From IMG/VR virus record IMGVR_UViG_3300033143_001962, positions 1-64,000 of that record: a stretch of DNA of 64,000 nt. One strand, written 5' to 3'. A program made the position numbers and the translations under genes. Every line of letters starts with the position of its first letter. Position 1 is the first letter of the stretch. Below the pieces are notes generated by a model. It worked only from the letters and a program-made list of their open reading frames with translations, made no database searches and was not told the origin of the DNA. This document shows positions 11,576 through 51,100 of the stretch, in pieces.

Positions 11576-11608
11576 GCTTTTGATAGGCACTCATTAATAA
11601 ATATATTA

Positions 11609-12091
11609 GTGAACTACTTAATACTAATTGACGTTTGGGGACGATTGTCAACACCGTTAGAGATCATTTGTAAAACTAATATAGCATTATTAATATCTGA
11701 TGTCTCAGACAATCCAAATTGGAAAATAATATATCAGGATTTTGATCCTGATATCGATCCTAAAATTCAGCACGTTTGCAACAATTCAAATAATGCAATA
11801 CCCGAGCACGATTGGGCTAATTTAAAATTAGATTCAAAAGACATAGTGTACTTTGCTGGGTTTCATGCTAATCACTGTTTGTTTGAGAAACCGTTAGGTA
11901 TTGATAATCTATTAAGTTTGCACCCTGCTCAAGAATTTTTTGTGTTATCCGACCTAACATGTGGGCTGAATCAACACACTCCTGTACCTATCAGTGACTT
12001 ATCTATTATTAATTTCAATAATGATTATAGTGTAAAAATGAACATGCGGCGCGCAATGCTGCTCGATAATTTACTTAGTATACAAATTTAA
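11609..12091 (+). CDS. isochorismatase/cysteine-hydrolase-like protein
   Basis: LILIDVW ... VYFAGFHANHCL ... VLSDLT. Confidence 0.55.
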   Translation: MNYLILIDVWGRLSTPLEIICKTNIALLISDVSDNPNWKIIYQDFDPDIDPKIQHVCNNSNNAIPEHDWANLKLDSKDIVYFAGFHANHCLFEKPLGIDNLLSLHPAQEFFVLSDLTCGLNQHTPVPISDLSIINFNNDYSVKMNMRRAMLLDNLLSIQI

Positions 12092-12094
12092 GTC

Positions 12095-12123
12095 AAAAAA
12101 AAGCACTCCGAAGAGTGCTTTTT
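12095..12123 (-). terminator. intrinsic terminator after major capsid gene (likely bidirectional)
   Basis: Minus strand AAAAAGCACTC-TTCG-GAGTGCTTTTTTTT with a UUCG tetraloop. Confidence 0.9.
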
Positions 12124-12146
12124 AGATATTGCTTTACTACCTGGTC

Positions 12147-16558: not shown

Positions 16559-18259
16559 TTATGGTAAGTCAACATCTACAGTATCAGGACCTTCTGCGTC
16601 CATACTGTCCATGTCTTCCATGTCTTCCATATCTTCGAAGTCACTCATGTCGCCTAAGTCGCCATCCATACCGCCCGGACTAACACCTACGCCACGTAAA
16701 TCAGATCCACTAGTGCCGCCCTCTTCGTCGTCTACAGCATTTTCTTCGCGCCATAGTTCTTCGTTCTCTGTCATTTCTTCTTCAGTTAAACCTAAGTAAC
16801 GTTTAAGTGCGAAGCGTTTAGACATATAAGGTATGTCCGCTGTACTGCCGAAGTTACCTAAACGTGCAGTATCAAGCTCACTTTGTCGGTAGCTTGCAAA
16901 GTTCTGTGGGTTATTAAACTTAATATCAAATAAGCCTGCGTCAATGTTAAAGCCTCTCCAGCGTAAAAACATCTTAAACTCTTCGTTTAATTGTGTTACA
17001 AGTACGTTTTGTAAGCGTTCGCAGTACTGGTTAAATCTAAATTCTTGTATTAATGCGCCAGTACCACCATCTTGTTTAGTAGTTTGATCTGCGCTGTCGT
17101 CTGGGCCGCTTGGCAAGTAACTGCTAGGTACACGTAAGCCACGTGCCATTTTGTTGTTAAAGTAACGTAAGTCATCTATCTCACTTAAGTTTTGTCCACC
17201 CGGTAATGTATCTACTGTAGAGCCACGTCCGTCTGCATCCTTAGGGAAGAAGTAATCTTCATTCATTGATATAGGATTATAGCTTGCATCAAGCATATTC
17301 TGCCCACCGCCGTTCTGTGTAGGTATACGTCGTTGATGCATTTCATTCTTAATACGTTCCACAAAGCCCATAGCTAAGTGACTAGGCATATTACCAGTAT
17401 CAATGTTAAACACTCTACGTTCTGGTGCGCGTTGGATACGATAAATTAATATAGCATCTTCTAATAATTCTTTTTGTTTATACACTTTAAACACTTGTTC
17501 AAGTATACTTTGTCCAAATGGCCAGTTATAATCCATGCCTTCTGTTAAGCTTAAGTGCATAATATGAGCAGCATCAATAGCTACTTCTTGTTGATTAAGA
17601 CTAAAACGTCCATGACTTCCGCCGTCTTGATTTGGAATTGTGTACGATTGTGGTGCAGTGGCGCCTTGCCCTGGTGCTCCGTTTTGGAAATCACTTGTTG
17701 TCTTTGCGGCTACTGTTAAGTTCTCAAAGTTAGGGTTAATGTCTTGTATAATGTACTGCTCTGGCTTTTTACCTTCACTTTCATTTACAATAACTCTTGT
17801 TACTTTATTAGTTTCAATCCAAAATAGTTTAAATGTTTCTGGATCACGGATAAACACTTGGTCTCCGTATTTAATAGAGTTACGGAATACTTTAAAGATA
17901 CGCTTGTCGAACTCGTTAAGCTTAACCCATTGTGTTAACTGTTCAGCTAGTATTTTAACTTCGTTGTCTGTAGGTTTTTCACTGTAGCTTATTTCAAATG
18001 CAGTTTTGTTTTGTTCATTTTGTTGTGTACTGAACTCAGCAATAATATCTAAACATGCATTGATTTCGCTGTCCATATCCATTGTCTCGTACTGATTGTA
18101 ACGTTCAATACGATTAGGGTGCCCAGTGTACACTTCCGGTAATGTGTTCTTGTAGTTTTGAAAACCAAAGTTCTTACCGTCGGGTCCGTGACTCGCTCCG
18201 CTTATTGGGCTCATCATTCCTGTTGTGTCTGCTACTTTGAAATACTTTTTCCATGCCAT
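16559..18259 (-). CDS. gp20: portal protein (gp20-like)
   Basis: LLEDAILIYRIQRAPERRVFNIDTGNMP, SMNEDYFFP, TVDTLPGGQNLSEIDDLRYF. Confidence 0.95.
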   Translation of the reverse strand: MAWKKYFKVADTTGMMSPISGASHGPDGKNFGFQNYKNTLPEVYTGHPNRIERYNQYETMDMDSEINACLDIIAEFSTQQNEQNKTAFEISYSEKPTDNEVKILAEQLTQWVKLNEFDKRIFKVFRNSIKYGDQVFIRDPETFKLFWIETNKVTRVIVNESEGKKPEQYIIQDINPNFENLTVAAKTTSDFQNGAPGQGATAPQSYTIPNQDGGSHGRFSLNQQEVAIDAAHIMHLSLTEGMDYNWPFGQSILEQVFKVYKQKELLEDAILIYRIQRAPERRVFNIDTGNMPSHLAMGFVERIKNEMHQRRIPTQNGGGQNMLDASYNPISMNEDYFFPKDADGRGSTVDTLPGGQNLSEIDDLRYFNNKMARGLRVPSSYLPSGPDDSADQTTKQDGGTGALIQEFRFNQYCERLQNVLVTQLNEEFKMFLRWRGFNIDAGLFDIKFNNPQNFASYRQSELDTARLGNFGSTADIPYMSKRFALKRYLGLTEEEMTENEELWREENAVDDEEGGTSGSDLRGVGVSPGGMDGDLGDMSDFEDMEDMEDMDSMDAEGPDTVDVDLP

Positions 18260-20423: not shown

Positions 20424-21263
20424 ATGAGTGAAAATCCTTTAAAGCAATATTTTAGAACAGCAGCGATACATTTAGATTTACCGTCAAAAGGTAAGTTCTA
20501 CCCAGATGACACTTTAGAAATGCCCGAGACAGGTGAAGTTGAAGTGTTTCCTATGACAGCGTTAGATGAAATAACATACAAAACACCAGACGCATTATTT
20601 AACGGTTCAGCCGTAGTTGATGTTATACAAAGCTGTATACCTGCAATTAAAAATGCATGGGAGATGCCCATTATAGATTTAACTGCGGTACTAACTGCAA
20701 TCAGAATTGCAAGTTTCGGACATCAAATTGACATCGAAACTAAATGTCCTGAGTGCGGTGAGAAGAGTGATTATGGTCTTGATTTACGCAATGTACTTGA
20801 TTCTGTTACTCCACCTGATTACTCTAAATCACTTAGTATTGGTGATCTTAAAATTATGTACAAGCCAATGTCGTACAGAGACTTAAACGAAAATAGTAAA
20901 TTACAATTCGAAGAAGCAAAGATAGAACAGTTACTTGTTACAGATGAAGCCGAAATGAGTAATGAGGAACAGTTAAAAATTATGTCTGATGCATTTAAAA
21001 AAGTATCTTTATATACATTAACTGCATTATCTAATAATATTAGTAAAATCATTACACCAGACGTGACAGTCTCCGACAACGAACACATTGTTGAATTCTT
21101 AGAAAACTGCGAACGTGATAGGTTTAAGCTTATTAAGAAAGAAGTTACTGACAGTCAGTCTGACAGTATTATAAAACCGTTACATATTAAATGCATCAAA
21201 TGTGAACATGAATACGATGAACCGTTCACTTTGGATATGTCATCTTTTTTCGCGCAAGACTAG
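20424..21263 (+). CDS. gp26: baseplate hub assembly protein (gp26-like)
   Basis: LPSKGKFY, PMTALDE, IRIASFG, CPEC ... CIKC zinc motifs. Confidence 0.75.
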   Translation: MSENPLKQYFRTAAIHLDLPSKGKFYPDDTLEMPETGEVEVFPMTALDEITYKTPDALFNGSAVVDVIQSCIPAIKNAWEMPIIDLTAVLTAIRIASFGHQIDIETKCPECGEKSDYGLDLRNVLDSVTPPDYSKSLSIGDLKIMYKPMSYRDLNENSKLQFEEAKIEQLLVTDEAEMSNEEQLKIMSDAFKKVSLYTLTALSNNISKIITPDVTVSDNEHIVEFLENCERDRFKLIKKEVTDSQSDSIIKPLHIKCIKCEHEYDEPFTLDMSSFFAQD

Positions 21264-21268
21264 TAATC

Positions 21269-21481
21269 TTGGATTCTGACGGTATTGAGGGGTACATCAA
21301 TCAATTGGAAGATGAAGTTAAAGACATTAAAAATTCAGCACTACAACTAACATGGGCTATGCGTGGCGGTGTGCAATATCACGACACACTTAACATGTGT
21401 TTTGACGAACGCAAAATGATAGCCGACATATCAAAAGAAAATCTAGAAGTTACTAAGAAGTCAGGGCTTCCGTTCTTTTAA
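21269..21481 (+). CDS. small baseplate assembly protein (gp51-like position)
   Basis: Follows gp26; LTWAMRGGVQY...ER motif. Confidence 0.5.
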   Translation: MDSDGIEGYINQLEDEVKDIKNSALQLTWAMRGGVQYHDTLNMCFDERKMIADISKENLEVTKKSGLPFF

Positions 21482-21722
21482 GCAAGTCCTTACGTGTTTG
21501 CTTACCATCCTCCCAAGACACACACATAGCACCATCTAATATATTAGCTACTGCAATCTTCCTAGGAATCTGAATTACTTCATTATGTTCTACACAATAA
21601 AGTCTGTAATGATGACTTTTATCTTTGTACGTGAGCTCACGGTAGTAATGTGTGCAATTATCATTACACAAATGTTCTACTCGCTTTTCAAATCTAATGT
21701 AAAAGTCTTTGATGTTGCTCAT
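21453..21722 (-). CDS. hypothetical protein
   Basis: C/H-containing 89-aa ORF with a GATAAGTA late-like box upstream. Confidence 0.45.
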   Translation of the reverse strand: MSNIKDFYIRFEKRVEHLCNDNCTHYYRELTYKDKSHHYRLYCVEHNEVIQIPRKIAVANILDGAMCVSWEDGKQTRKDLLKRTEALTS

Positions 21723-21779
21723 ACATGTACTTATCAGAATTTAATGTCATGGCTATGAAATAATGTATTAAATGACTTA

Positions 21780-22538
21780 AGATCTAGCTGCGCAGATCTA
21801 TTCGTTTGTTTACTTCGTGAAACAAACTCATCTGTTTTCAGACTAATTAGTATAGATATTTTTGAAAGAGTAATTACTTAATGTATGATAGATGGAGCAC
21901 TTACTGATACTCGAACAGAGTCAGTGGCCATACTTCACCCACCCTAGGGTAAGTGAAAAAGAATTCGAACGTCCTCGTTAGTCCAAGTACATAAAATCTG
22001 ATCCCATGCGGAAATTCTAGCACAAGCCGTAAATCAAACCATGTTTCTACACGATAGGTATGTGTTACTGTTAAGTAACATGAAGGCGGTCGTCCTCAAA
22101 CCTTCTCATATCCCGACTCACACGACGGAACCCGTACACACCTCGTTGTAGTCACCAGCGTGTACTGAGTCGACGGTTGTATCTTTTTCACAGAGCCGTC
22201 ATCTTTTAGCCTAAACACTTATATCTCCCATATTGATTTATTTTCACAGTTAAACGCATTACATGGTAGGCGTATTGCATCATCGTCCTTTGGTAGGATA
22301 GTAACTGTTAATCCCGCTATTGCTCGGAACGTTTAGGTGTCCTTCTCATCATTTGGCTGAGGAAGTTTTACCGCGTGTAGTATCCGCCCCACGCAAAGGC
22401 TTTCAATAGTGTTTAGGCTAAAATCAATAAATTGCTGGTATGTATTGTGTCCCACATAACTTTTCCGTTATGCATTTCGCTGGGTGCGTATTTTGAGAAT
22501 AAGATTTTATAGAGTTTGCTCTCTTTATGTAACGTATG
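21780..22538 (-). ncRNA. candidate large structured non-coding RNA (~750 nt)
   Basis: No ORF of 60 aa or more; perfect 16-bp long-range stem; more than 10 hairpins, with G-U pairs mostly favouring the minus strand; upstream promoters. Boundaries approximate. Confidence 0.6.
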
Positions 22539-22544
22539 TGTTAC

Positions 22545-22601
22545 ATTATAGCATCTTCTGTACAAAATGCAACTAATAAGTTACATTTAATGATATTTAT
22601 A
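22545..22601 (-). promoter_or_regulatory. sigma70-type promoter (TTGCAT-16-TATAAT, TGn extension) plus late promoter TATAAATA (22594..22601), both pointing into the non-coding region
   Basis: Direct motif matches. Confidence 0.6.
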
Positions 22602-22634
22602 TTATCAATTGTCTGTACAAAAATAAATACTAAC

Positions 22635-23165
22635 ATGGCATATATAGAGCTTAAAACAAAGGACATTAAAATCCTAAAAGAAAAACTCCACAAGCAAAAT
22701 GAAGGCATCTGCCCTTTGCTTGGTGTCCAAGTGCCACCTGAACAAATGGCATTAGATCATATACATAAGCTTAAGTCCGAAGACTACGCTGATGATAAAG
22801 GAACTATACGCAATGCTATAGAGTTCCGAGCTAATGCACTAGAAGGTAAAATAACAAATAATTGGAAACGTTATTACGGTGCTGATACTTCTAAGCACTT
22901 AACAGATCTTCCAACTTTCTTACGCAACCTTGCTGACTACTTAGAAGCTGGAGCTTACACAGAAGACGGAGATTTTTATATCCATCCTAGTGAAGTACCT
23001 AAACTTCCAAAAGTCAAAAAATCATCTTATAATAAAATGATTAAACTCTTCAAGATAAAATATCCCAAAAAGAAAGTACCACCTTATCCAAAATCTAAAA
23101 AATTAACTAAACTTATGGACAAGCTGTTTACTGAATTTGATATAACTGATTTTTATTACAGTTAA
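22635..23165 (+). CDS. endonuclease VII (gp49)-like nuclease
   Basis: Likely start MAYIEL. QNEGICPLLG...ALDHIH...GTIRNAI..RANALEGKI...FLRNLADYL. Confidence 0.75.
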   Translation: MAYIELKTKDIKILKEKLHKQNEGICPLLGVQVPPEQMALDHIHKLKSEDYADDKGTIRNAIEFRANALEGKITNNWKRYYGADTSKHLTDLPTFLRNLADYLEAGAYTEDGDFYIHPSEVPKLPKVKKSSYNKMIKLFKIKYPKKKVPPYPKSKKLTKLMDKLFTEFDITDFYYS

Positions 23166-24146
23166 TCACCACTCGGTGATATGATTGATGTCACCGAGTT
23201 TTTCTTGTGTACATTTGTTCTTGCACTCCGACGATGTAAATAGTAATTCTTCGTACCAACTATCTAATTCTGTAATTGGTGTATTGTACAAATTTAACGC
23301 ATTACTTGTCCATGCATCGTTGTGTTCGTATCTATTAGCAACCCAGCAACACGGATAAAGCTCACCTCGGCTATTTAAAAATACACCCTTGTTACCAATA
23401 GAACATAAGCCGCTATTTGATGTTAATGCCGCAGCACGTTCTTTAAAGATTACTTTCAAGTCAGCGCCAGGTCTGACTTTATTAGTAATATAAGCTAACT
23501 CTCTTTCGTACCGTTTACTACTTGATAGTAAATTAGGATCAGTGGGTTTTAATTTATCGTCTTTTATCCACTTAGTACTTTTTGTTAGCTGGAATAAATC
23601 AAATTTATATTCTATAGCTAGATTTAATAAATCTTGTATGTTGTCTTGATTAAACTTAAAACCTATTGAGGCCCATACTTTATAAGTTGAGTTATTAACA
23701 CTAGTGAACGCATCAATCCCATCCATGATACCCGCCCAATCTGAATTAATGCGATACATCTTGTTTGAGGCATGATCGAATCCGTCAATACTCCAATGCA
23801 TTTCATCATTTTCATTAAGCACCTCACCAAGTGCTGTCCACCAATTCAGTGGTCTGTAGCTTCCGTTTGTTATAATAACAAACATAATGTCTGGGTTACA
23901 CGCCTTAAACCATTCAATGATTTGAATTAATTCAGTGGCATATATTGGATCACCGTCGTTACCGCATAACGTTATCTTCTTAATATTTTTAGCAACATTT
24001 GCACCTACCGTATCTTTAAAGAAATCTAGTGTTAGCTGCTTATTAAGCAACGACTCAGGCACCTCGGCCCTAGGACATCGCGGACACTGCAACGGACAAC
24101 GACTGCTTAGTTCTATATGCCAGTGGTCTAATGCTATACTAGTCAT
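23166..24146 (-). CDS. radical SAM protein with C-terminal SPASM/twitch-like domain
   Basis: CPLQCPRC (CxxxCxxC), CGNDGDP, ITNGS, SIDG, G.LYPCCW; start approximate. Confidence 0.85.
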   Translation of the reverse strand: MTSIALDHWHIELSSRCPLQCPRCPRAEVPESLLNKQLTLDFFKDTVGANVAKNIKKITLCGNDGDPIYATELIQIIEWFKACNPDIMFVIITNGSYRPLNWWTALGEVLNENDEMHWSIDGFDHASNKMYRINSDWAGIMDGIDAFTSVNNSTYKVWASIGFKFNQDNIQDLLNLAIEYKFDLFQLTKSTKWIKDDKLKPTDPNLLSSSKRYERELAYITNKVRPGADLKVIFKERAAALTSNSGLCSIGNKGVFLNSRGELYPCCWVANRYEHNDAWTSNALNLYNTPITELDSWYEELLFTSSECKNKCTQEKLGDINHITEW

Positions 24147-26124
24147 CGACGCCTTCGTATGATGTAAAGCCACCCTCTTTAATTACTTTAATTGTATTAT
24201 GCACACGACTTATTAGTTCGTCTTTGTGTGATACAAGCCATACAGACTTGTTACGCTCACGCGCCATACTCTTAAGTATTTTAATAGACGAATCAACGCC
24301 GTTAGCATCTAATCCATTGTCTAGTAGTTCGTCTACAAACAATAGGTTTATATGACTATATAGCGATTCCCATACATCTCTAAACGCCCAACTTAATGAT
24401 AATATTAAACGTGTACGCTCGCCACGACTTAAGTTATCAAAGTCTAACTCGCGGCCCATGTCGCTAATCTCTACAGTTAAGTCACTCATGAACCTAACTT
24501 GATGCGGTAATCCAATTTCGTCTAAGTAGTGTGTTAATCTATTGTTTAAGTAAGCTAAGTTCTGCTCTATAATCTTCTTACGTATAAAGCTATCCTTGCT
24601 TGTTAATAATTTAAGTAAGAATGCTTGATGTTCCTGCATTTCAGTTAATCGATTCATTTCATCGTAACTAACATCTTGTATACCACTGTCTTGCATAGTT
24701 TCAATCTGTGCAGTATATGGATCTGTTTCAAGTGCTGATACTTCTAACTGTGCTATTAATGTATTAAGTGAACTCTTGTGTTCGTGTGCTTCGTCAATAT
24801 CTTTATAAAAAGTTTTGAGTACTACAGGCTCTATGCGTGGCACTTCATCTTCAAATGGAACAGTAGGATCATCTTGTTTACTTACTGCCATCCCTTTAAC
24901 TTCAGGCGGCGATCCTAGCTCTGCAAGTTTTAATTTGTATTCATCTTCTTTAGTAGTGTTATCTGCTAACTGAGTACTGTAGTCAGTCATCTCAGTTTGC
25001 TTTGCAGTTATGTTTTCTTCTTGCTTTTCATCGTGTAGCTCTTGCCCGCATGAATGACACTTGTGGTCTACGAGTAAATCAATATCTTTTTGTAAGCCTT
25101 GCATTCTGCGTTCGCATTTTGTATTATCTGTTTCTAATTGCGTGATCCATTTGTTACAATCGAGTACTGCGGTATTGTATTCTGTTACTACTGCATCCTT
25201 AGATGCTTCTTCTGCGTCTATTACAGCATTGAACTTAGTTACTTTTTCTTTTTCAACGTGATATGCAGCCATAGCTACTTTGTGTGCTTCTTTGCTTGCG
25301 TCAGAGAGTGCGTACCACTCAGTCTTTGCATCTTCTCTTGCTTGCGTGTTGTCTTTGTGATTGCTAATTTCTTTTTCAATGTTTATGTCCATTAACTTAT
25401 TAATGGCCGTGCCAAGATTGGTGTCTTTTGTGTGTTTGTCAGTTTGCCACATTGTTTGTCTGTCTTGAAGATTCTCAATTTGCTCTTCAATGTGTAAATT
25501 AGACTTTAATATAGCACTTAGTAAGAACTCTTCTTCTTTTAAACCATCCTTTGTACTCTTGTTTGCAACTTTAAGTGCCTCTGCCTTCTCAGACAGTACA
25601 GTAATACCAAGTAGTTGTTCTATAATGTTCTTTTGATCGTTGTTACGCATTGATAAGAACGGTTCAGTGTACGTATTAAGTGCTACACTGTGCTTAAACA
25701 TATCGTGACTAAGATTTAGTAACTCTTCAATCTCTCGTTGCGTTTCTCTGTTCTCACCTTGTGCTTCATCACCTTCTGTATCTTCACCATTCTTATAAAA
25801 TTTTAATAAGTTTGGCTTACGACCGCGCTCGATTCTGTACTCAACATCATCAATGTCAAAGTCCACAGAAACAAGCATGTTCTTTTCATTTGTTTTGTTT
25901 ATTAGATTGTTAACACGAATCTTAGTAAGTGCATCACCGTAAAATGCATAACTTAATGCATTAATTAACGTAGTCTTACCAGTACCATTCTTACTGCCAT
26001 TAGCACCTAAGTCTAAGTTTTCACCTAGTACAAGTGTTAAGTCTTGTCTATCGAAATTTACTGCTTGTGTTGCATTACCAACACTCATAAAGTTTTTTAC
26101 TGTTAAATTCTTAATACGAATCAA
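24139..26124 (-). CDS. gp46: recombination exonuclease ATPase subunit (gp46/SbcC/Rad50-like)
   Basis: KNFMSVGN, Walker A GSKNGTGKTT, zinc hook CHSCGQ, signature LSRGE, Walker B LLFVDE, VSH. Likely TTG start at 26124. Confidence 0.93.
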   Translation of the reverse strand: MIRIKNLTVKNFMSVGNATQAVNFDRQDLTLVLGENLDLGANGSKNGTGKTTLINALSYAFYGDALTKIRVNNLINKTNEKNMLVSVDFDIDDVEYRIERGRKPNLLKFYKNGEDTEGDEAQGENRETQREIEELLNLSHDMFKHSVALNTYTEPFLSMRNNDQKNIIEQLLGITVLSEKAEALKVANKSTKDGLKEEEFLLSAILKSNLHIEEQIENLQDRQTMWQTDKHTKDTNLGTAINKLMDINIEKEISNHKDNTQAREDAKTEWYALSDASKEAHKVAMAAYHVEKEKVTKFNAVIDAEEASKDAVVTEYNTAVLDCNKWITQLETDNTKCERRMQGLQKDIDLLVDHKCHSCGQELHDEKQEENITAKQTEMTDYSTQLADNTTKEDEYKLKLAELGSPPEVKGMAVSKQDDPTVPFEDEVPRIEPVVLKTFYKDIDEAHEHKSSLNTLIAQLEVSALETDPYTAQIETMQDSGIQDVSYDEMNRLTEMQEHQAFLLKLLTSKDSFIRKKIIEQNLAYLNNRLTHYLDEIGLPHQVRFMSDLTVEISDMGRELDFDNLSRGERTRLILSLSWAFRDVWESLYSHINLLFVDELLDNGLDANGVDSSIKILKSMARERNKSVWLVSHKDELISRVHNTIKVIKEGGFTSYEGVDD

Positions 26125-26726
26125 TCGAAATTCCTCATTAAATTTTCCTTCCATGGCAGCATTCTTAGGTTGCTTACCGCTGATGCATCTTCTACACTCA
26201 TACCTTTTTCAAAACATTCTTTTATTGTTTTGATATGATCTAACTGCCATCCACCTTCTACACCACATAACGTTCTTGGGTAATTTTGTGGGTTAATTAT
26301 TTTCTTGTGTACATTATACACTTTTCCGCTCAGTCCGTGTACCTTTCTGGCATATTTTGTATATTCCTTAATATTAGGGTTTCTTATTTTTCTTGACCCT
26401 AATCCTTTTGCAGCAACATTATTTGTTTTTTGCTGACACGAGTGCGAACAATACTTCTTTTTCAGCTTAATCATAACTTCAAATGTAGTTGTGCAATCCG
26501 GGTTAATGCATTCTCTAGTTTCACGAGGCAGTTTATTAGATCTTGTTGCTCTAGATCTACCTGTCATTGCTTTTGACTGGTTGCCTTTAATTCCCAACGC
26601 ATATCTTTTATTTCTTACTGTGCCTTCTCTGAGTCTCAACTTTTCAGCAATTTCACGCACACTTTTAGTTGTATCGTGTAATAAATTAATTTCTTCGTCG
26701 GTCCAGTTATGTGGTTTTATCATCAT
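26121..26726 (-). CDS. free-standing HNH homing-endonuclease-like protein
   Basis: N-terminal WTDEE HTH, C-x4-C/C-x3-C zinc motif, LDHIK...NLRMLPWKEN; inserted between gp47 and gp46. Confidence 0.7.
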   Translation of the reverse strand: MMIKPHNWTDEEINLLHDTTKSVREIAEKLRLREGTVRNKRYALGIKGNQSKAMTGRSRATRSNKLPRETRECINPDCTTTFEVMIKLKKKYCSHSCQQKTNNVAAKGLGSRKIRNPNIKEYTKYARKVHGLSGKVYNVHKKIINPQNYPRTLCGVEGGWQLDHIKTIKECFEKGMSVEDASAVSNLRMLPWKENLMRNFD

Positions 26727-39101: not shown

Positions 39102-42100
39102 ATGGCAAGAATTCGTAGTGTAGATTTTTTACCTGAAATCTTTCAAACAGAGACTAACAAAAAGTTCTTGAACTCAACTCTTGATCAATTAATTCAAGAG
39201 CCAAAGTTTAAAGAAGTACAAGGTTACATCGGACGTAGGAATGCACCTGGTGCAACGCCAACTGATGGCTATGTACTAGAACCTACAGCTGATCGTACTA
39301 ACTATCAACTTGAACCGGGCGTGACATTTAAAGATAGCGATGGCAAGACAATTGATGCTCTATCTTACTTAGGACTTATTAACGGACTTAAGGCTGCAGG
39401 CGCGAATGTTGATAATCACGATCGTTTATTCCGTAGTGAGACATACAGTTGGAGTCCGTTTATAGACTTTGATAAATTTGTTAACTACTCACAGTATTTT
39501 TGGTTACCGGCTGGCCCAGATAGCGTAGACGTAGGCGAACTTGCTGACGGCGTACTGTTAACTAACGACTTTAACATGGAGCAAGAAGAAGATACATACA
39601 GCGTAGAAGACTACAGTATCGACAATCCAATCATTACAGTAGCACGTGGTGGCGAATATACATTTAATGTTAATCAACCAGGACAAGAGTTCTTTATACA
39701 AGCACAACCAGGTGCCGACGGTACCATGCCATGGGCTGCAAACATTAGTTCACGTGACGTACTTGGTGTTAGCAACAACGGCGAAGACAGCGGCGCAGTA
39801 CAATTTAACGTACCGCAAAGTAACGCACAAGACTTCTACCATAACTTAACAAGCATAGGTGATGTTGATTTAGCAACCTCAGTACGCATGGATGAGATTG
39901 CAGATCAATTATTAGATGATGTCGGTGAACACTTAGGCATACAAAACATCAACAACAATACTATTGTATTTTTAAATGATCAACTAGGCGATGCAGTCGA
40001 CTTAGGTTGGATCAATAATGGAATCCCACTGACAACATTAGCAGAACGTTATCAAGTTTTTAAAATCGTTCTCGAAGACGTCGCAGGCGATGTGTATGTT
40101 AGACTAAACCCTTACCAACTTGTAAATAACTTAGAAAAGTTTACAGTACAGTACGGTAACGAACACAGTAACAAGACATTTTATAAAACTCAACAAGGTG
40201 TGTTTAAAGAGATGCCAATTTTAACAGCATCATTGACTACACTGTACTATCAAGATTCATCACACCCGGATCGCTTTGGTGTTATAAACATAGTCGATGC
40301 AAATGAATCTCCTACACTTAATATAAGTGATATACTTGGCAGAACAGATTACACTAGCGCAAATGCAGTGGTGTTTACTAATGGATTAAAAGTTAAATTC
40401 CGCGGCAACACAAACCCAGCAGAGTACAGCGACAATGAGTACTTCGTTGAAGGCGTAGGCACTGCTATTAAGTTAGTCGCTGTCAGCGATTTAATAATAC
40501 CAGAAGCGTATGCTAAGAGTACGACAGCACCATGGGATACTAGCCCATTTGATTCAGCAGGACTCGATGGAACATTAAATGCCCCACTTGATCAAGACTA
40601 CATCACAATTAACAGATCAAGCATTGATAGAAACGCTTGGTCGCGTAGTAACAGATGGTTCCACATTGATGTAATTACTAAGACAGCAGAATATAATAAC
40701 GTTGTACTAGACTTAGATAATAACGACAGAGCAGACAGACCCGTAATAGAGTTTGATGCAGACTTACGTTTATTTAATTACGGCACTAACGGTAAGGATA
40801 GTATTAACATAGTAGACACTACAGAAGTAGATGCACTTTCAAACGTTAATGACGAAGAAAGCTATACTATAGACGGATATAACTTAGTAGAAGGATCACG
40901 GGTTGTTTTCGCAGCAGATGCGGATTTATCAGTGCGTAATAAAATTTATGTTGTTGAACTAGTTGACTTAAACAACAACGGCACAGAGACTATAAACTTA
41001 ACTCTTGCAGAAGATAGCGAAAGTGAAAACAATGACGTTGTACTTGTTACTAACGGATTAACACAACAAGGCGCAGTGTTTACATTTACTAATAATGTAT
41101 GGGTACAATCACAACAAAAAGAATCAGTTAATCAAGCTCCATTGTTTGATGTGTTTGATACAGCTGGTACCTCACTCAGTGATTTACAAGCATATCCAAG
41201 TACTTCATTTGCAGGTACTAAGGCATTTAGTTATGCAGAAGGAACTGGTCTTAAAGATAAAGTCTTAGGCTTTCCATTAAAGTACTTAAACATTGATAAC
41301 TTAGGTGACATCGTTTTCGAGAACAACCTTTACACTGATACGTTTATTTACGTAGAGAACAGTGTATCAAAAGACAATAGCCCGGTTGGCGATGGTTACT
41401 TAAGAAAGTACAGCACACGAGAAGAATACACAAATGAAATTGGTTGGTCTAAGACAGTTGAAGAATCGTACTTAGCACAAATTTTAAACTTCGAGTACAC
41501 AGGTGCAGCACTTGAATTAGATGTATTACCTAAGGTAGGATTGAGTATACCAGCTGTACATATTACTATTAACAACGAATTTATTAACCCTTCAGACTAC
41601 ACAGTAACTGATAACGTTATTACATGTTCGAATATTATTGCAGAAATAGGCGATACTATCACTGTTAATGTTATAAGTGACGAAGTAAGTAAATTAGGTT
41701 ATTACGAAATTCCAAGTAATATAGCAAGCAACATGTTTAATGAAAATACAGATTTGCTTACACTAGGTACAATCCGTAATCACTTTAATAACTTATCACA
41801 ACATATCTTAGACATTGATGGTGATGTAAACGGTGCAAACAACTTACGTGACTTAGGCGACATAAGCCGTTACGGTAATTTAATTGTACAGCAATCAGCA
41901 CCACTGGCACTTGCAGCAATGTTTATGCGCAACAAAGAATATAACTTCTTTAGTGCTACAGAGTTCAATGCAAGACAATACGAGAAATTTAAAAACCAAT
42001 TAATGGATTGGGTTAGTAAGAACGAAGTATACGGAATGGATGCAGGCGAAGTACTTGATGCCGCATTGAAAGAATTAAATGCTAACAAGCACGTAGACGG

Positions 42101-45100
42101 AAGTTTTTACTGGAGCGACATGCTTGCGACAGGTGAAGACTTCGAAGCAACAGAGTACGGTATTACTGCTATAAGCACAAATACTTTTACAACTCTTTAC
42201 TCGTACAATTACACAAGCGCAAATAGTAAAGCATTATTAGTGTACGTAAACAATGAACTACTAACTAAAGATGCAGAATACACAGTAGCGAATGATGGCC
42301 CACGTATTGAAATTTTAACTACTCTAGACGTAGGCGACATTGTTACTATAAAAGAATACAACACAACAGTTGGTTCAGGTATACCAAGTACACCTACTAA
42401 AATGGGAATGTACCCTAAGTTCAAACCAGAGCTGTACACAGATAACACATACGTTAAACCAACAGATGTTATCAGAGGACACGACGGTAGTGTTACAGTA
42501 GCGCACGGCGACTTCAGTGATGATGTTTTACTTGAATTTGAAAAACGTGTTTATAATAACATTAAAGTTAATGCTGAGATACCACTATTGTACAGTGATG
42601 TACAAGGTGGACAATTCCGCTTCACAGATTACACTGACGCTGAAATCAATCAAGTACTTGCTCCTAGCTTATTAAGCTGGTTAGGTTGGAACAGAATTGA
42701 TTACAAAACACAAGACTACAATAAGCTAGAAAGTAAAACATGGAACTACAGTTCGGCACAATGTAAAGAAGGCGACAAAGTAGCTAAAGGAAACTGGCGC
42801 GGAATTTATAACTGCTTCTACGACACAGATGCACCACATGAACGCCCGTGGGAAATGCTTGGTCTAACAGAGCAGCCAACGTGGTGGAAAAATAGATACG
42901 GCCCTGCACCTTATACAGCAGGTAACTTAGTACTATGGGACGACTTAGAAATTGGCTTAATTAAAGAGCCAGGTAACGAACGCATAGCAGAAAGATTTGT
43001 GCGCCCAGGATTAACAAACGTACTTCCTGTAGACGGTGAAGGCAAATTGTTAATGCCGCTTGATACAGTAATATCAGATTACACTGAATATGACTTTAAG
43101 AAGTCTTGGGCACTAGGCGATCACGGTCCAGCAGAAACAGCATGGCGTAAGTCAAGCGCGTTCCCTTATGCTGTACAGACTTTATTAGCATTAACTAAGC
43201 CTGCGCAGTACTTCAGCTTAATGGCAGACAGAGATAGATACACTTACAACACAGATTTTAATCAGTACTTGTACGATGAAAGACATAGAATTGATTCACG
43301 TAAGGTAGAGATACTTGAAGAAGATACATTTAAACATAGTTACATAAATTGGATTGTAGATTATAATAAGCATTACGGTTATAACTCATCTGAGAAACTA
43401 AAAGAAGATATGAGCAACTTAGGTGTTAGCTTAATGCACCACATGGCTTCATTTACAGATAAGAACAGCTTACGTATATTTACAGATAAGAGTTCCCCGG
43501 ATAGCACTAATAGTAGTTTATTACTACCAGACGAAAGTTACAACTTATTAATGTACAAGAATCAACCATTCGACGAGATTATATACTCATCTGTCATTGT
43601 ACAAAAAACAGAAGATGGCTATTCAGTGTCAGGTAACAGTGCAACGAACCCGTACTTTAAAATATTTGCAAGTGAGCCAACAGGACAGTTTAAAACTATT
43701 ACGGTAGGACGTACAGAGCGTACATCGACATCTGTTAATGTACCGAAAGACTTCACAGAAGAAGTCGTGTTTATCCCTTATGGTCACGTATTTAGAAGCA
43801 GACAAGCAGTAGCAGACTTTATCGTAAGCTATAACAAGTACTTAGTAGCACAAGGTTTGCAGTTCAATGACGCAGTAGGTACTATACAAGTTGATTGGGA
43901 AGAAATGGTTAAGGAGTTTATTTACTGGACTGACCAAGGCTGGTCAACAGGCAGTGTAGTTAATTTAAACCCATCAGCAAGCACATTAGAATTCGAACGT
44001 GAGTTAGTACTTGTAGACGACTTAAACAATTTAGAATTAAACGAACAACCACTGGATCAAAACCGCGAGCCATTACAATCCGGCGATTATGTTGTTGATA
44101 GAATTGATAATAACTTTAAAATTAGAATGTTAAACAATAACGTTATAAGTTACTTGAAGTTTAACTTAACTAACTTCGAACATTTATTAGTACTTGATAA
44201 CGTAAGTATCTTTAACGACTTAATGTACGATCCGGTTACTGGTGTTAGACAACATCGTGTTAAACTTTCTGGTTTTGCAACATATGATTGGAACGGCCAA
44301 CTTGATGCGCAAGGCTTCTTATACAACGACGATAACGTAGTTGAATGGAGCCAAACTAATAGCTACAACACAGGTGATATTGTTAAGTTTAAAAACTCGT
44401 ACTGGAGTGCAGCAGAAAAGCTACAACCAGCAGCAGAGTTTGATTTTAGTAAGTGGGTCAAGACTAATTACAATGATATTAAGAAAGGCTTGTTACCTAA
44501 TATTGCAACGAAAGCAGACCAACAACTTGATTTCTATAATAATAAAACAGCTAACTTAGAAAGTGATGTTGATTTAATGGCACTTGGCTTAACAGGCTTC
44601 AGAGCGCGTGATTACTTACGTGCATTAGATTTACATGACATAAGTCAAGCACACATATACAGTGACATGATACAGTCTAAGGGAACAGCAGATAGCTTGA
44701 ACTTATTCCAAGATGTTATACTTAACAACGAAGTTGTTGATTACGAAATATACGAAAACTGGGCAATTAAACGTGCAGAGTTCGGTGCGAGTAGTAGCAG
44801 AAGTTACATTGAATTACAATTAGATGAAACGTTCCACACAAGCAATCCGAGTATTGTAGAAGTTGTTAATGCAACCATTGACGCAGAATTTGGCGACCAA
44901 ACAATTACAACGGCAAACATATACAAGCAAAGCGAAAAGAACATAGATAAAAACATACTACCAACTAACGGTGATAAGAATTTAGATACTATGCTACCAT
45001 CAGCAGGTTTTGTTAACCCAGACGATGTAGATATTGCTATATTTGAATTAGCTGACTTCCCTGAAGTGACAGATGTCATTGATGGTACACTTGTATGGGT

Positions 45101-48100
45101 TGCTAAAGATACAGTAACAGATTGGAATGTGTACAGAGCATTTGAATTAGAAGCAGTGATAACAGATGTGCTTGATAACTTAGACGGTTCACTTACATTA
45201 ATATTTGATACTGAACACGGACTAGCAGCAAGTGAAATTTTAGTAGTACAAAATGTTGATGCAGCATTAGTAGATGGCACACATATTATAAGCTCAGTGA
45301 CTGATGACTTTAAAGTTGTTATCCCGGGCGAGTTAGCACAGAATCAAACTACTATAGATGATGTTACAGGAACAGCATTAAAGTTCCTATCAGTGCGCAT
45401 GGAAAATCCAAGCAGCATTGCAGGCTCATTTGTTGATAACAGATTATTTGCAACGGATACTGTATGGATTAACGAATACAATAGTAAAGGTGCAGTGTAC
45501 GAAAAGTCAAGTCCATTTACACCAGTGGTGTCTTACATTAGCCCAGAAGAAGAAGCTAATTCGGAGTACGGTTATGACGTAGTACAAGGTTATAACGGCG
45601 CTGGCATGATGGTAAGTGATCCGGCTATTAATACAAAAGGACAAGTGTTCTGCTTTGACAAATTTGGATCAGCCGATTATATATTAAATCAAGTACTTAA
45701 ACTTAGATCTACAGAAGTAGCACGTTATGGTGAATCACTTGCGATGTCTGAGGAATGGGCAGTAATTGGTGCACCGGGCGACGGAGCATCTATACCAGGT
45801 GTTGCAGTACTAGTATCACGTGATAAGGTTAAAGGATTGTTTAATGAAATTCAAGTTATGACTCATCCTGACGCTACTAACGCAACTCTACTAGATACAG
45901 AATTCGGTAAGAATGTTACATTAAGTACAGATGAGAATTGGTTGTACGTAAGCGAACCTAATGCAAACAAAGTTCACTCGTATCAAAAAGTAGAACATCA
46001 AGCACAAACTATTGCAACAACAATGGACGGAATTACCCAGAATATTTTTGTAGAAGATGTTATTAAAGCTGATACAAAGAATGAATTGTCGGTGACGTTA
46101 GATGGCAACTTACTTTCAACAGCAGAGTACGAATACGACGGAACAAATGTAGTATTTGATGTTACGCCAGCAGATGGTGTTATTGCCCGCGTGTCACGCT
46201 TAGACTCGAATGTGTTTGACGGTAACGGCTCAGCTCAATTCACAATAAACAATGTTTATGCATTGAATGGAATTGATTCTATTAGAGTAGCAATTGATGG
46301 CAATATACAACGTCCGCGATATGATTACACACTAGCAGGTAACGTGTTAACATTTACAACAGCACCTGACTTAGGTACTAATAATATAGTAGTTACAGTT
46401 GATACACATTTTGCTTATGTGAGCACTATTGCAGAAGCAAGTGGTGACTTCAGTACAGCAGTTGATGCAACGACAGATAGCAGTCACATTATAATTACAG
46501 CACCAGCAGATGACAAAGCATATATTTACGATAGAGTTGTTGAACGTTTTGTAGTACACAAAGATGATGCTCTATTAGAACCAATTACGTTTACCCTTAA
46601 TCCTATCGCAGGTAGAACTGTGAGCGGTAATGTATTTGTAAATGGTGTGAAGCAAATTAAAGAAGGATTCAATGTAAACCCTAATTACAGTGTAAGTGGT
46701 AATACAATTACATTTATAACAGACAATGTAAAAGTCGGCGACTTCGTTGATGTTGATACAACTGAATTTAAAGAAATACAAACATTAACAGGCCCAGCAG
46801 GTTCAAGCTTTGGTAACGATGTAAGTATTTGTAAGTCTAAGTGCTCTATATACTTCGGCGCTGAAAATGATAACGACGGCGAAGGTAGTGTTGTGCGCTA
46901 TGTTAACAAAACAAGAATGTACGGTATTATACAAAGTACAATACAGGACTTAACAGTTAGTGTAGGTGATAGTTTACGTGTCAATAATGTTGAGATCGTA
47001 TTTACAGGAACAACAATAGACCAAGTAGCACAAGATGTCAACGATGCTGCAATACCGAATGTTATTGCAAGTGTTAACGATGGTTACTTAATAATCGAAC
47101 TTAAGAACAAAACAATTACATCGATTGCTAACAAGTTAGACGTATTGCCTGGCAAAGGTACTACAATGGCATCGCTTGGCTTACAATCTTACTACAATGG
47201 ACAAACAATTACAAGTCCGCAACCAGCTGCTGGAGCACATTTTGGTAGCTCGGTGCAAATTGACTTAAACTTAAATCAATTAATTGTAGCAGCGGTAAAT
47301 GGGCCGATTGCATACGGCGCAGACACAACTGAAGTTCTCGCAGATACAACAGCGTATACAGCAGACATGGCATCAACAGGTGTAGTTTATACATACGATT
47401 TACTACCTGACGCAACAGAGTTTAGTGAAGGCAAATTAGTATTTGGCCAACAAGTTATAGATGATAAGATGGTAACTACCGGACTGTTTGGTAATGCCGT
47501 AAGCTTAGTAGACGGTACACTAGTTGTTGCATCAATTGCTTACGACACAGACACGTTAACTGATGTAGGGCGAGTTGCTATATTTGAAAATAAAGAAAAC
47601 AAGTTAAGCTGGAATGCAATTAAAACAGAAAAAGACATTGTTGATGTTAGCTTAATTAACTCAGTATTCATTTACAACAATGAAACGTTTGCTGTTGAGC
47701 AGTACCTAGATTACATCGATCCACTTAACGGTAAGATACTTGGTGTAGCTAAACAGAATATAGATTACATAGAAACAAAAGAACCAACAGTGTATGGCAG
47801 CGACTTCACAGGTGCATTATGGGGCAAACAACAAGTTGGACAAATGTGGTGGGATATTAGTACATGTAGATTTGTTGATTATAATCAAAACGATAGTGTA
47901 CAAGCAAGCAAGCTATGGGGCAAAATGTACCCAGGTAGCAGTGTTGATGTTTATCAATGGATTGAAAGTGATGTGACACCAGACTTATACGACGGCGCAG
48001 GTACAGTGTACGATGTAACTAAATTTGTTACAATGTCAGAAATAAACAATAGCGGTATTATACAAAATACTTATTACTACTGGGTTAAAGGTGTTAATGC

Positions 48101-51100
48101 AGTAGATACAAACGCTCACAAAACTTTAAGTGCAGACGCAGTAGCTCAGTACATTGAATCACCAATTAGCTCAGGCATAGCGTACTGTGCATTAATTGAT
48201 CAAAACATTGTAGGGCTGTATAACTGTAAAGAAATTATCAACAGCACTAAGTCAGTACTACATATTGAATACGATAAGATTAAAAATGATAACAATGTAT
48301 TCCACGAGTACAGCTTATTAAGAGAAAACTTTGCCAATGACTTCTTACCAGATGGGCTGTACAAAAAGTTCCAAGACAGCTTATGTGGCGTTGATAGCTT
48401 AGGCAATAAAGTACCGGATGTTAACTTAAGTTATAGTGATAGATTTGGTATTGATTTTAGACCACGTAAGTCTATGTTCATTGATAAGTTTGCAGCTCTG
48501 ACAAGTTATTTAGAGCGTGTTAATGCTATAATGAAATTAAGCACTATTGCAGAGTCTAGGGTTTATCCTTTACTTAATAGTGAAGAGCCTATCCCTGCGC
48601 AAGCATCAGGTGCATGGGATGAAAAAGTATTTAATACAGAAGAACTATCGTTCCAGGACTTAAACATTGTTCCAGCAGGGCACACGTACTTACTTGAAAC
48701 AGATAGTAATAGTAACGGCTTATGGGCAATTTACGAAGTAACAGCCACCAAGACTTTACAATTAAAACGTGTGCAAAGTTATGACACTAAACGTTTTTGG
48801 AGTACTGAGAATTGGTACGCAGAAGACTTTAGTCCGTTTACTAAATCGGATTATGTTGTAGGCACTTATGCAGAATTAGCAGCAATAGACGCAGCTAACA
48901 ACGCAGTGGCTAAAGTACTTGAGAACAGTGTTAACAAGTGGGAAATATACAGATACGAAACTGATACATGGGTACGTGTTGCGTTAGAAAGCGGAACTAT
49001 ACAGTTCAATGAACGTTTATGGAATTATGACTTAGGACGTTACGGTTGGGATACAGAAGTATTTGATGCACAATACAACGATGAAGAACCAGTAATTGAA
49101 TTAAGAAAAATTATTCAATCAATTAACGAAGAAATATTAATTGGTGACTTAGCAGTGGAACGTAACAAAGCGTTCATGTCAATGTTTAATTACATATTGT
49201 CGGAGCAACCACATGTTGATTGGTTGTACAAGACAAGTTTAATTGATGTGAATCACAGAGTACGTAGCTTAAGTCAATATGCAGTATACCAGAAAGATAA
49301 CCAAGACTACTTAGCAGATTACATCAAGGAAGCTAAGCCTTATCATACTAAGATTAAAGACTTATTACTTAGCTATGACGGCAACGATGTATTTGATGGC
49401 TCACTGACTGACTTTGATTGTCCAGCAGTGTACAGCGATGAGTACAATAAATTTATTAGCCCGATCTTAGATGATGGTGCTATCCTTACAACAGACGTAA
49501 GCAATGTACTTGCAGATGATGCACAATGGCAAACAAGCCCATGGGCTGAATGGTACAACAACTACAGATTAAATATCAGTGAAGTTGAAATAGTTAACCC
49601 AGGTAGTGGATATACATTTGCTCCTACTGTTACTGTTACAGGTGACTGTGTAAATCCTGCAGAGCTTATTGCAGTGGTATCAGGCACAGGCGAAATTAAA
49701 GAAATAGAAATTGTTAAAGCAGGCTGCGGATACATTAGCGCACCAATTATTACAATAGAAGGTGGTAACGGCAACGGCGCTACTGCATTAGCTATTACAG
49801 GTAACAACGTAGTCAGAACGCTAAACACTACTATTAAGTACGATAGGTACGAATACGAGTCAAACGTAGTAGAGTGGGAAGCACTAACTGAGTACACCGA
49901 AGACCAATTAGTACGTGTTAACAATGCAGTATATAAAGTGCTTACAACAGAAGAAAGTGCAGAAACATTTAACCCAGCATTACATGAGTTAGTTGATATC
50001 GAAACCTTAAGTGGTATTGATAGAACAACAGGCTACTATGTGAGTGATGTTAACAACCCAGGACTAGACTTATCATTATTAATTAATGGCATTGCATACC
50101 CGGGTGTTGAAGTTGACAGTGTACACTTTGCACAATCACTTGACTCAGTAGGTCCAGAAGGCTTACCGACGTACAGTGAAGAAATAATAGATACAATTTA
50201 CGAGAGCGCGTTCTTAGATACTTACTTAGGCACAACGCCTATAGATATTAATATAGACGGCGGTATGTTCATTGATACATATCACTCACATGCACCGGAC
50301 GAATTAGTTCCAGGTGCAATGTTTGATACACTTGATATTAAAGTGTTTAGTCGCCCTGGCTCAGACTACAACAATGATGGACATGGGTTTGATATACAAA
50401 GCGTAACGAATACAGCAAGTGGAACAACAGGCACGTTTAGCTTTGATGCCGCAGCAAATCACGCAATTGAGCTTGTAGTTGTTAATTTAACAACAGGAGC
50501 AACATTGTACGAAGGTGCAAATTACAGCATTAACTGGACTGACAAGACAGTAGAAGTTACTAGCGGTATTGTACAGGGTGATGAAGTTAAGATATTTGTT
50601 TATGAAATTGGCGGTGGCAATCAGTTGTACAGAGCTACAATGACAGGCGATGAAGCTAATAATACATTTACTGTACCGGCTAAACTGGACGAAATATATA
50701 ATATTGTAATGTTTGCCAATGGTGTTGAACTTACTAACGTAACAACAACCCCAATTAATAATCAGTCATCACTTGTTACTATAACAGGCACTTTACAAGC
50801 AGATGCATTTGTTACTGTTACGGTATTTGGATTTAATATTCCGCAGCGCGACGAAAGCTACCCAGTTACACAAACGTTTATATATGGTACTGATGCACTT
50901 GAAATGGACGTTGATGCATTGACTGGTAAGAACAGACATAACGCTATTGTTGAAGTAAACGGCTTACGTTTACAGCCAGAAGAAGGTGTGCGTAGTATTG
51001 CAAATGGAATAAACACAACGTTCTTATTGCCACAAGGCGGCAATTACAGTCATGACTTAGTTGCAGATAATGAAGTGTCTGTATATGTTAACGATGTGTT

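Follow-up and report, generated by a model that had tools for sequence, protein, structure and literature searches.

A large structured non-coding RNA gene of an uncultured T4-like jumbo phage, inferred from comparative sequence analysis, contains a Polynucleobacter-1-like domain

The longest ORF-free stretch in the first 64 kb of an uncultured T4-like jumbo phage record encodes, on the minus strand, a conserved, multi-domain structured RNA of roughly 700 nt. Its core recurs in at least 119 viral contigs and is not in Rfam 15, whereas one of its domains is a divergent homologue of a known motif, Polynucleobacter-1 (Rfam RF01718; Weinberg et al. 2010, PMC2864571). The 141-nt motif described previously is, on this evidence, an optional module of a much larger and apparently undescribed phage RNA family. 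We suggest that the RNA folds independently and acts as RNA, as a ribonucleoprotein scaffold or a ribozyme, and that it is expressed with the early recombination-nuclease operon, although this role is inferred from sequence alone.

Results

The ORF-free region and its stems

The window analysed here is positions 1 to 64,000 of the 249,797-bp IMG/VR record IMGVR_UViG_3300033143_001962, which is estimated to be 72% complete and has a GC content of 0.386. It carries T4-type genes, listed with the features of the RNA in Table 1. An initial annotation, made from the sequence alone, had proposed a large ornate non-coding RNA with its own early and late promoters in the only long ORF-free stretch of the window. 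The observation itself holds: 21723-22535 has no ATG-ORF of 60 aa or more, GC rises to 0.43-0.475, and the perfect 16-bp inverted repeat and every other stem that had been listed are present, each with a counterpart in relatives and most with compensatory changes. The stretch is the longest such gap in the window but not the only one, as a second lies at 11595-12146. Folding of the single sequence is only weakly better than that of shuffles, with a z-score of -2.10 for the minus strand and -1.11 for the plus strand, and this alone would not be convincing; it is the comparative data that show the stems to be more than chance.

The minus strand, which had been favoured on the basis of G-U pairs, is correct, as the conserved helices hold many G-U pairs that would be A-C on the other strand. 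ARAGORN found no tRNA or tmRNA. A search of the 64-kb window with the Rfam models gave no hit at gathering score, and within 21400-22900 there was no match at E up to 10 to GOLLD, ROOL, HEARO, group I/II introns, RNase P, 6S, tmRNA or tRNA. A strong match to a known family had been named beforehand as a result that would remove the novelty, and none was found at gathering score; the finding is not wholly novel, because one domain is a known Rfam motif of unknown function.

Table 1. Coordinates of the RNA, its parts and the neighbouring genes in the window
Position	Strand	Feature	Evidence and remarks
16559-18259	-	Portal gp20	
20424-21263	+	Baseplate hub gp26	
21453-21722	-	89-aa ORF downstream of the RNA on the same strand, with a CxxxC...HxxxxC..H pattern	No homologue in 5.8 billion proteins apart from itself; weak similarity to a 70-aa ORF at the same place in L025 (E 3e-6, pairwise); absent in the other clades
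21780-21832	-	3' module: AUGAG, hairpin 1 (21804-21827), GAAUAG, hairpin 2 (21780-21799)	Same layout with covarying stems in L025, L061 and L071; may be the terminator or 3' end
21894-21929	-	H14 hairpin (ACUGA/UCAGU core)	Hairpin of variable sequence at the same place in all clades
21928-21954 (stem listed as 21934-21957)	-	H13 conserved hairpin (ACUUACCC/GGGUGAAGU) followed by AUGG	Eight pairs in a sequence-only alignment with compensatory changes, for example GC:9 CG:8 UA:4 at one pair; the string AAGUAUG is present in 56 of 111 relatives
21955-22063	-	Variable insertion domain	Roughly 30-110 nt or more in relatives; only weak conservation (the ...AUGG... string), structure not resolved
22064-22079	-	H9 tetraloop hairpin GUUACU-UAAC-AGUAAC	Hairpin at the same place in all clades, with GAAA, GUAA, UAAC and similar loops; 4 of 4 pairs compensatory
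22082-22130	-	H7/H8 H-type pseudoknot: UUCCG-GUCGU (22122-22126) pairs with ACGAC (22089-22093) inside the H8 hairpin GAAGG (22101-22105)/CCUUC (22082-22086); ACCGCC near-invariant	H7: 95.1% of cells paired, 73 changed on both sides, shuffle maximum 34; H8: 95.3% paired, 29 changed on both sides, shuffle maximum 14; both recovered by an unbiased scan
22114-22172	-	H6: outer helix CGACUCA (22166-22172)/UGAGUCG (22114-22120), inner helix GUACAC/GUGUAC (22134-22165)	Hairpin of variable sequence, 8 of 8 pairs compensatory in the freshwater clades; present in all clades
22172-22200	-	H5 hairpin: stem GACGG/CCGUC around the loop CUCUGUGAAAAAGAUACAA; the searched 20-mer, which adds the first C of the 3' arm, is 22176-22195	20-mer exact in at least 119 IMG/VR contigs; stem 91.7% of cells paired, 99 changed on both sides, shuffle maximum 42
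22204-22219	-	3' strand of the closing helix of domain I; contains the family-wide string UAGGCUAAAA	Perfect 16-bp inverted repeat with 22408-22423
22252-22399	-	Domain I: Polynucleobacter-1-like module, helices P1-P4, strings GCAAUAGC, ACUAUCC and GGACGA; stem at 22243-22252/22302-22311 also present	RF01718 at 21.3 bits, E 0.046, full-length; domain enclosed by the 16-bp helix, 22204-22423
22404-22409	-	CUAUUG, 5' strand of a pseudoknot with the P3 loop CAAUAG (22317-22322)	Strands covary: CUACUG/CAGUAG in the main clade, CUAUUG/CAAUAG in the window and L025, CUAUCG/CGAUAG in L061, CUAUUA/UAAUAG in L071; outside the Rfam model
22408-22423	-	5' strand of the long-range closing helix of domain I	Helices of 19-20 bp with compensatory changes in L061, L071 and L025
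22449-22487	-	Upstream conserved module: GCACCCAGCGAAAUG, hairpin CAUAAC/GUUAUG (22455-22472), then UGGGAC	Motif shared with L061 and L025; hairpin covaries: CAUAAC/GUUAUG in the window, CACC/GGUG in L061, GCCGU/ACGGU in L025
22527-22622		Direct and inverted repeats	
22545-22553	-	TGCTATAAT, putative extended -10 sigma70-like element; predicted start near 22539	Sequence match only; not listed by the generic scan because its -35 element is weak
22594-22601	-	TATAAATA, T4 late-promoter-like octamer pointing into the RNA	Sequence match only; the same octamer sits 27 nt before the ATG of gp26 and 21 nt before the ATG of the portal gene
22636-23165	+	Endonuclease VII/HNH-like gene, transcribed away from the RNA	phrog_423 at 2e-20, phrog_36860 at 4e-16, Pfam Endonuclease_7 at 21 bits; occupies the nuclease slot that holds GIY-YIG or PD-(D/E)XK genes in relatives
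23166-24173	-	Radical-SAM gene	
24139-26154	-	SbcC/Rad50-like gp46	

Domain I is related to Polynucleobacter-1

With relaxed thresholds, the only notable Rfam match is RF01718, and it covers the domain enclosed by the 16-bp helix. The match is below the curated gathering score of 37 bits, and the window copy does not therefore qualify as a member by score; however, it has the P1, P2 and P3 hairpins, the P4 three-way region and the conserved strings GCARUAGC, ACUAUCC(U) and AGGACGA. A 23-base pattern built from the strings shared by the window and the Rfam consensus found 18 IMG/VR contigs, all of which are RF01718 at 54-101 bits. One of these loci (L016/L025, 54 bits) matches the window directly by blastn, with 72.8% identity over 158 nt (E 1.5e-14), and a second intermediate locus (L061), which scores 38.7 bits, is 69.6% identical to the window over 289 nt. 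The homology is thus traceable through intermediates and is supported by conserved gene order. Two further patterns built from the window and L025 found only L016 in IMG/VR, and a pattern specific to the clade of the window gave 0 hits in metagenomes.

In the contigs found with the pattern, the order is gp46, a small nuclease, the RNA on the same strand, and then a convergent small ORF and gp26. The nuclease is a SegE-type GIY-YIG protein, except in L016, where a radical-SAM gene plus a PD-(D/E)XK nuclease is found. The discoverers of Polynucleobacter-1 reported 16 examples, none in a purified phage, downstream of GOS11034 genes with possible homology to PSSM2_218 of cyanophage P-SSM2 (PMC2864571, Additional file 1), and typical members lie downstream of this same GIY-YIG gene. 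In the window, the slot holds the endonuclease VII-like gene on the other strand, while the wider order (gp46, nuclease, RNA, convergent gp26) is kept.

The RNA is much larger than the Rfam motif

An alignment of 22 distinct sequences from six clades shows conserved blocks and helices well outside the 141-nt model, namely a 5' strand, CUACUG, that pairs with the P3 loop CAGUAG, and, further downstream, H5, H6, H8, H9, H13 and H14. RNAalifold on the full 662-column MAFFT alignment gave only a partial structure, and we defined the helices per segment instead. A covariance model (R1) built only from freshwater clades and only from sequence outside the Rfam model hits window 22064-22210 on the minus strand at 24.1 bits, with E of 6e-4 to 1e-3 in searches of 106-169 kb and 8e-6 in a search of 1.4 kb; the next window hit scores 10.8 bits. 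On the resulting alignment, which has the caveat of being fitted to the model, 94.7% of cells are paired, 17 of 22 pairs have changes on both sides, 0 of 500 shuffles reach this, and slid partners pair at 49% at most. R1 is too insensitive for relatives that lack domain I, which makes its negatives uninformative, and it was replaced by a second model (R2).

The 20-nt sequence CTCTGTGAAAAAGATACAAC, consisting of the H5 loop plus the first base of the 3' arm and taken from the window, occurs exactly in at least 119 IMG/VR contigs. These give 94 unique sequences in 49 clusters at 85% identity, and mean column identity in the core region is about 41%. Only one of 17 scanned loci (L061) passes RF01718. 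In most loci, H5 begins about 100 nt after the upstream stop codon, so domain I is absent, and L002 and L003, the closest gp26 relatives of the window, also lack it; L045 is an example of a core-only relative. On a sequence-only alignment of 53 sequences, an unbiased scan recovered H5, H7 and H8 as the top covarying helices (Table 1). H7 is formed by the 5 nt after an invariant CCG pairing with the 3' part of the H8 loop just before CCGCC; we had considered a simple local hairpin for H7 but rejected it in favour of this H-type pseudoknot. Frequent G-U pairs fix the strand as the one that carries gp46. R2, built from 48 sequences without the window, scores the window at 78.4 bits (E 1.2e-19).

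R2 finds one copy in a complete 328-kb genome and one in a 186-kb record, and none in Methylophilales phage Melnitz-3 or Synechococcus phage S-RIM2. Genomes of 185,579 prokaryote species gave a single hit, on a 1.3-kb MAG contig. DNA searches of GenBank phages returned no match for the window region, for the RNA of the relative or for the H5 region, and hence no cultured carrier.

The window, L025, L061 and a further locus (L071) form a subclade that shares the closing helix of domain I (16-20 bp, with compensatory changes), the domain I pseudoknot, for which the freshwater clade has CUACUG/CAGUAG, and the two-hairpin 3' module. The upstream motif, GCACCCAGCnAAAnUG followed by a covarying hairpin, is also shared but is missing from L071. 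The conserved RNA in the window therefore runs from 22487 to 21780, about 708 nt, which is close to the approximately 750 nt initially estimated, and would be about 760 nt if transcription starts near 22539.

Expression and promoter-like sequences

Only DNA runs hold the window sequence, at a share of 0.05. The freshwater relative L014, which has an RNA of roughly 540 nt, occurs in many lake metatranscriptomes, whose assembled contigs, which give neither ends nor strand, cover the RNA region at the same or lower depth than the flanking genes; a discrete abundant RNA is therefore not shown, and DNA carry-over is not excluded. The early and late promoters proposed for the window are sequence matches only. 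A generic promoter scan is at chance level, with 5 found against 5.4 expected, and TATAAATA is not enriched in the genome, where we count 20 copies, about 7 of them just upstream of an ORF. In most relatives, the RNA starts right after the stop codon of the upstream nuclease gene with no room for a promoter, which implies co-transcription there. The inverted endonuclease VII-like gene of the window would make a separate promoter necessary.

Discussion

The interpretation initially given is partly supported. It is right that this is a large structured non-coding RNA with about 700 nt conserved on the minus strand, that the listed stems are RNA helices, that it is not a tRNA, tmRNA, RNase P RNA or intron, and that it has no Rfam match to GOLLD or ROOL. 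It is not fully right in that the identity is not wholly unknown, since the domain within the 16-bp helix is a divergent homologue of Polynucleobacter-1, and that the rest belongs to a widespread family of phage RNAs and is not a one-off.

We regard it as shown by the analysis that the region is a single-copy gene for a large structured RNA with a strand-specific, multi-domain fold, that it is phage-specific within the searches above, and that its core always lies at the 3' end of the gp47-gp46-nuclease gene string, on the strand of gp46 and facing gp26. From 5' to 3', it consists of an upstream hairpin module; domain I, closed by the 16-bp helix and tied to its own P3 loop by a pseudoknot; a core made of H5, H6, the H7/H8 pseudoknot and H9; a variable insert; H13 and H14; and the 3' module. 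Its expression as a discrete transcript in the window and its mode of action are, in contrast, inferred. We suggest, with reasonable but not high confidence, that it works as RNA, not as DNA and not as a leader, and that it folds into a compact tertiary structure whose conserved unpaired nucleotides (the H5 loop, CCG...ACCGCC, GCARUAGC, ACUAUCC and GGACGA) form an active or binding site. It would act during early or middle infection as a ribonucleoprotein scaffold or a ribozyme. In most relatives, it would be made by read-through from the nuclease operon; in the window, where the inverted gene interrupts that operon, it is probably driven by its own putative promoters (TGCTATAAT and/or TATAAATA). 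A leader role is disfavoured because most family members have no same-strand gene downstream and convergent genes follow. No Rfam ribozyme or riboswitch matched, and no catalytic or binding activity can be inferred from sequence.

Of the alternatives, a cis-acting mRNA element is the one that survives best, although we consider it unlikely. In this view, the structure would be the 3' UTR of the gp47-gp46-nuclease operon, or in the window the 5' leader of the 89-aa ORF, and would control stability, processing or translation of those messages. The RNA begins within about 0-40 nt of the nuclease stop codon in most relatives, metatranscriptome depth equals that of the neighbouring genes, the window and L025 have a small same-strand ORF just downstream, and Weinberg et al. 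(2010) rated Polynucleobacter-1 as probably cis-regulatory. However, the RNA of the window is cut off from the operon by an oppositely oriented gene yet is fully conserved, the downstream ORF is absent in most clades, and a fold of 300-700 nt with two pseudoknots and long invariant single strands is far more than known 3'-end stabilisers need.

A link with the neighbouring nuclease is more doubtful, either with the RNA as its partner (guide, inhibitor or regulator) or with the ultra-conserved RNA gene merely as the landing site of free-standing homing endonuclease genes. Three unrelated nuclease families occupy the slot: SegE-type GIY-YIG (some with NUMOD3), PDDEXK_15 and, in the window, endonuclease VII/HNH. 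In S-RIM2, the GIY-YIG homologue sits beside a tRNA gene, and T4 SegB in the tRNA cluster is a precedent. A specific RNA partner would not be expected to serve three unrelated folds, there is no Rfam HEARO or omega-RNA match, and the GIY-YIG homologue occurs without the RNA in Melnitz-3 and S-RIM2. The landing-site reading best explains the neighbours but does not say what the RNA does.

A replication origin with a primer transcript, as at T4 oriF and oriG and as named initially as the alternative, is very unlikely. The region is the longest non-coding one in the window, lies beside the baseplate genes as T4 oriF does, has promoter-like sites pointing into it and has repeats nearby (Table 1). 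However, conservation follows RNA rules (compensatory pairs and strand-specific G-U pairs), GC is raised rather than lowered, so there is no AT-rich unwinding element, and there is no iteron array. A chance set of stems in a spacer, or a decayed gene, would fit the modest folding z-scores but is already refuted by the comparative data, since the 20-mer is identical in at least 119 contigs whose flanks have diverged to about 41% column identity, the helices covary, R2 scores the window significantly, and there is no ORF and no protein homologue for the adjacent ORFan.

Relative to Polynucleobacter-1, the window RNA aligns full-length through domain I but adds a 5' strand that makes a pseudoknot with the P3 loop and a closing helix, and the motif is here one module of an RNA of about 700 nt; most members of the larger family lack the module altogether. 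With GOLLD and ROOL, large ornate RNAs often carried by phages, it shares size class (hundreds of nucleotides), a phage location, many conserved helices and pseudoknots and an unknown biochemical function, and multimer formation has been seen for both of those RNAs, but there is no sequence or structure match to any Rfam family beyond RF01718, and the neighbourhood is recombination nuclease and baseplate genes, not tRNA clusters; the resemblance is by kind only. HEARO and the omega-RNA of IscB and TnpB nucleases are also structured RNAs of several hundred nucleotides next to a nuclease gene, but the nucleases here are small GIY-YIG, PD-(D/E)XK or endonuclease VII proteins, not RuvC/HNH effectors, and there are no transposon ends. 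The T4 oriF/oriG transcripts likewise come from a non-coding region with promoters beside baseplate or recombination genes, but the T4 origins are a promoter plus a DNA-unwinding element without conserved RNA tertiary structure, whereas here selection is on RNA base pairs.

We think it somewhat more likely than not that the window carries a member of a previously undescribed class of large, modular phage RNAs, with a core of about 300 nt and a full form of about 700 nt, conserved as a single-copy gene in a large group of uncultured T4-like (Kyanoviridae-like) phages from marine, estuarine and fresh water. The published Polynucleobacter-1 'sRNA' would then be only an optional plug-in domain. 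A 20-nt loop that stays identical across genomes whose proteins have diverged to below 40% identity, together with two pseudoknots, suggests a catalytic RNA or an RNA that grips an invariant host or phage component. RF01718, which for 16 years has had 16 original examples, no function and no known phage carrier, now has a host (T4-like jumbo phages), a fixed genomic address and a much larger parent structure. The larger RNA joins a short list, as few large, intricately folded bacterial or phage RNAs of unknown function are known, and such RNAs have repeatedly turned out to be ribozymes, guides or self-assembling particles. As more than a hundred contigs and many lake metatranscriptomes hold it, structure determination, covariation analysis and biochemical assays can start from sequence alone. 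The turnover of nuclease families in the neighbouring slot offers a natural system for studying how homing endonucleases exploit conserved RNA genes.

Several other readings were considered and not adopted. The sbcD motif (Weinberg et al. 2010) was considered because gp47 is SbcD-like, but it had no Rfam hit in 17 loci and is described as a 5' UTR element. That domain I is an insertion into a small hairpin of the core fits some relatives but not all, and we do not claim it. An antisense target for the H5 loop is not supported, as the 250-kb genome holds no complementary site other than the loop's own gene; a perfect 10-nt match to the H5 loop, a complement at 21953-21962, is unique to the window and not conserved. 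Outside the window, the genome holds 32 tRNA genes.

Neighbouring genes and sequence elements

The gene slot next to the RNA is filled by three unrelated nuclease families in different phages: an endonuclease VII / HNH-like gene in the window, and SegE-type GIY-YIG (some with NUMOD3) and PDDEXK_15 genes among the related viral contigs that carry the RNA (L013, L016, L045 and L057 in the table). This looks like turnover of free-standing homing endonucleases beside a very conserved RNA gene. In Synechococcus phage S-RIM2, the GIY-YIG homologue sits next to tRNA-Arg. The closest gp26 relatives of the window, the contigs L002 and L003, carry a reduced RNA without domain I. In these two, the RNA lies between an endonuclease VII-like gene and the GIY-YIG/gp46 genes, and the endonuclease VII-like gene is therefore on the other side of the RNA than in the window.

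The divergent promoter region between the RNA and the endonuclease VII-like gene holds an imperfect inverted repeat, which overlaps the putative -10 element, as well as two exact copies of TCTGTACAAAA. We suggest only that these could be regulator binding sites. Within the RNA, there is a perfect 10-nt complementarity between the H5 loop (GUGAAAAAGA) and the strand just 5' of H13 (UCUUUUUCAC). The match is unique to the window among 94 relatives and is thus either lineage-specific or due to chance.

On the other side, the RNA is followed by a small ORF with a CxxxC...HxxxxC..H pattern, both in the window (89 aa) and in the related contig L025 (70 aa; pairwise E 3e-6). A search of 5.8 billion proteins revealed no other homologue, and the ORF is absent from the other clades.

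Coordinates of the features noted around the RNA and elsewhere in the genome
Sequence	Position	Strand	Feature
Window	22636-23165	+	Gene in the nuclease slot, endonuclease VII / HNH-like
L013	4775-5203		Gene in the nuclease slot
L016	729-1262		Gene in the nuclease slot
L045	5961-6392		Gene in the nuclease slot
L057	6045-6587		Gene in the nuclease slot
L002	4752-5192	-	Reduced RNA without domain I
L003	5640-6080	-	Reduced RNA without domain I
Window	22527-22622		Divergent promoter region
Window	22527-22547 / 22566-22586		Imperfect inverted repeat
Window	22545-22553		Putative -10 element
Window	22557 and 22612		Exact copies of TCTGTACAAAA
Window	21953-21962 and 22182-22191		10-nt complementarity, strand 5' of H13 and H5 loop
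Window	21453-21722	-	Small ORF following the RNA
L025	756-968	-	Small ORF following the RNA
Window	39102-52130	+	Single open reading frame of 4,342 aa
Window	11595-12146		Second stretch without ATG-ORFs
Genome, outside the window	92-150 kb and 199221-199294		tRNA genes
Genome, outside the window	136-150 kb		Cluster holding most of the tRNA genes

Other features of the genome and its relatives

The long open reading frame lies within the structural gene block. The second stretch without ATG-ORFs is 552 nt long with a GC content of 0.33; GTG-start ORFs overlap it, so it may be coding. The genome has 32 tRNA genes, one of which has the anticodon CUA (an amber-reading tRNA, called ‘Pyl’ by ARAGORN) and one of which has an odd anticodon loop. 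The only ‘cellular’ hit of the Polynucleobacter-1 pattern, RFUY01000287.1, is a contig of 1,320 bp binned into a Gammaproteobacteria MAG and is most likely phage DNA in the bin.
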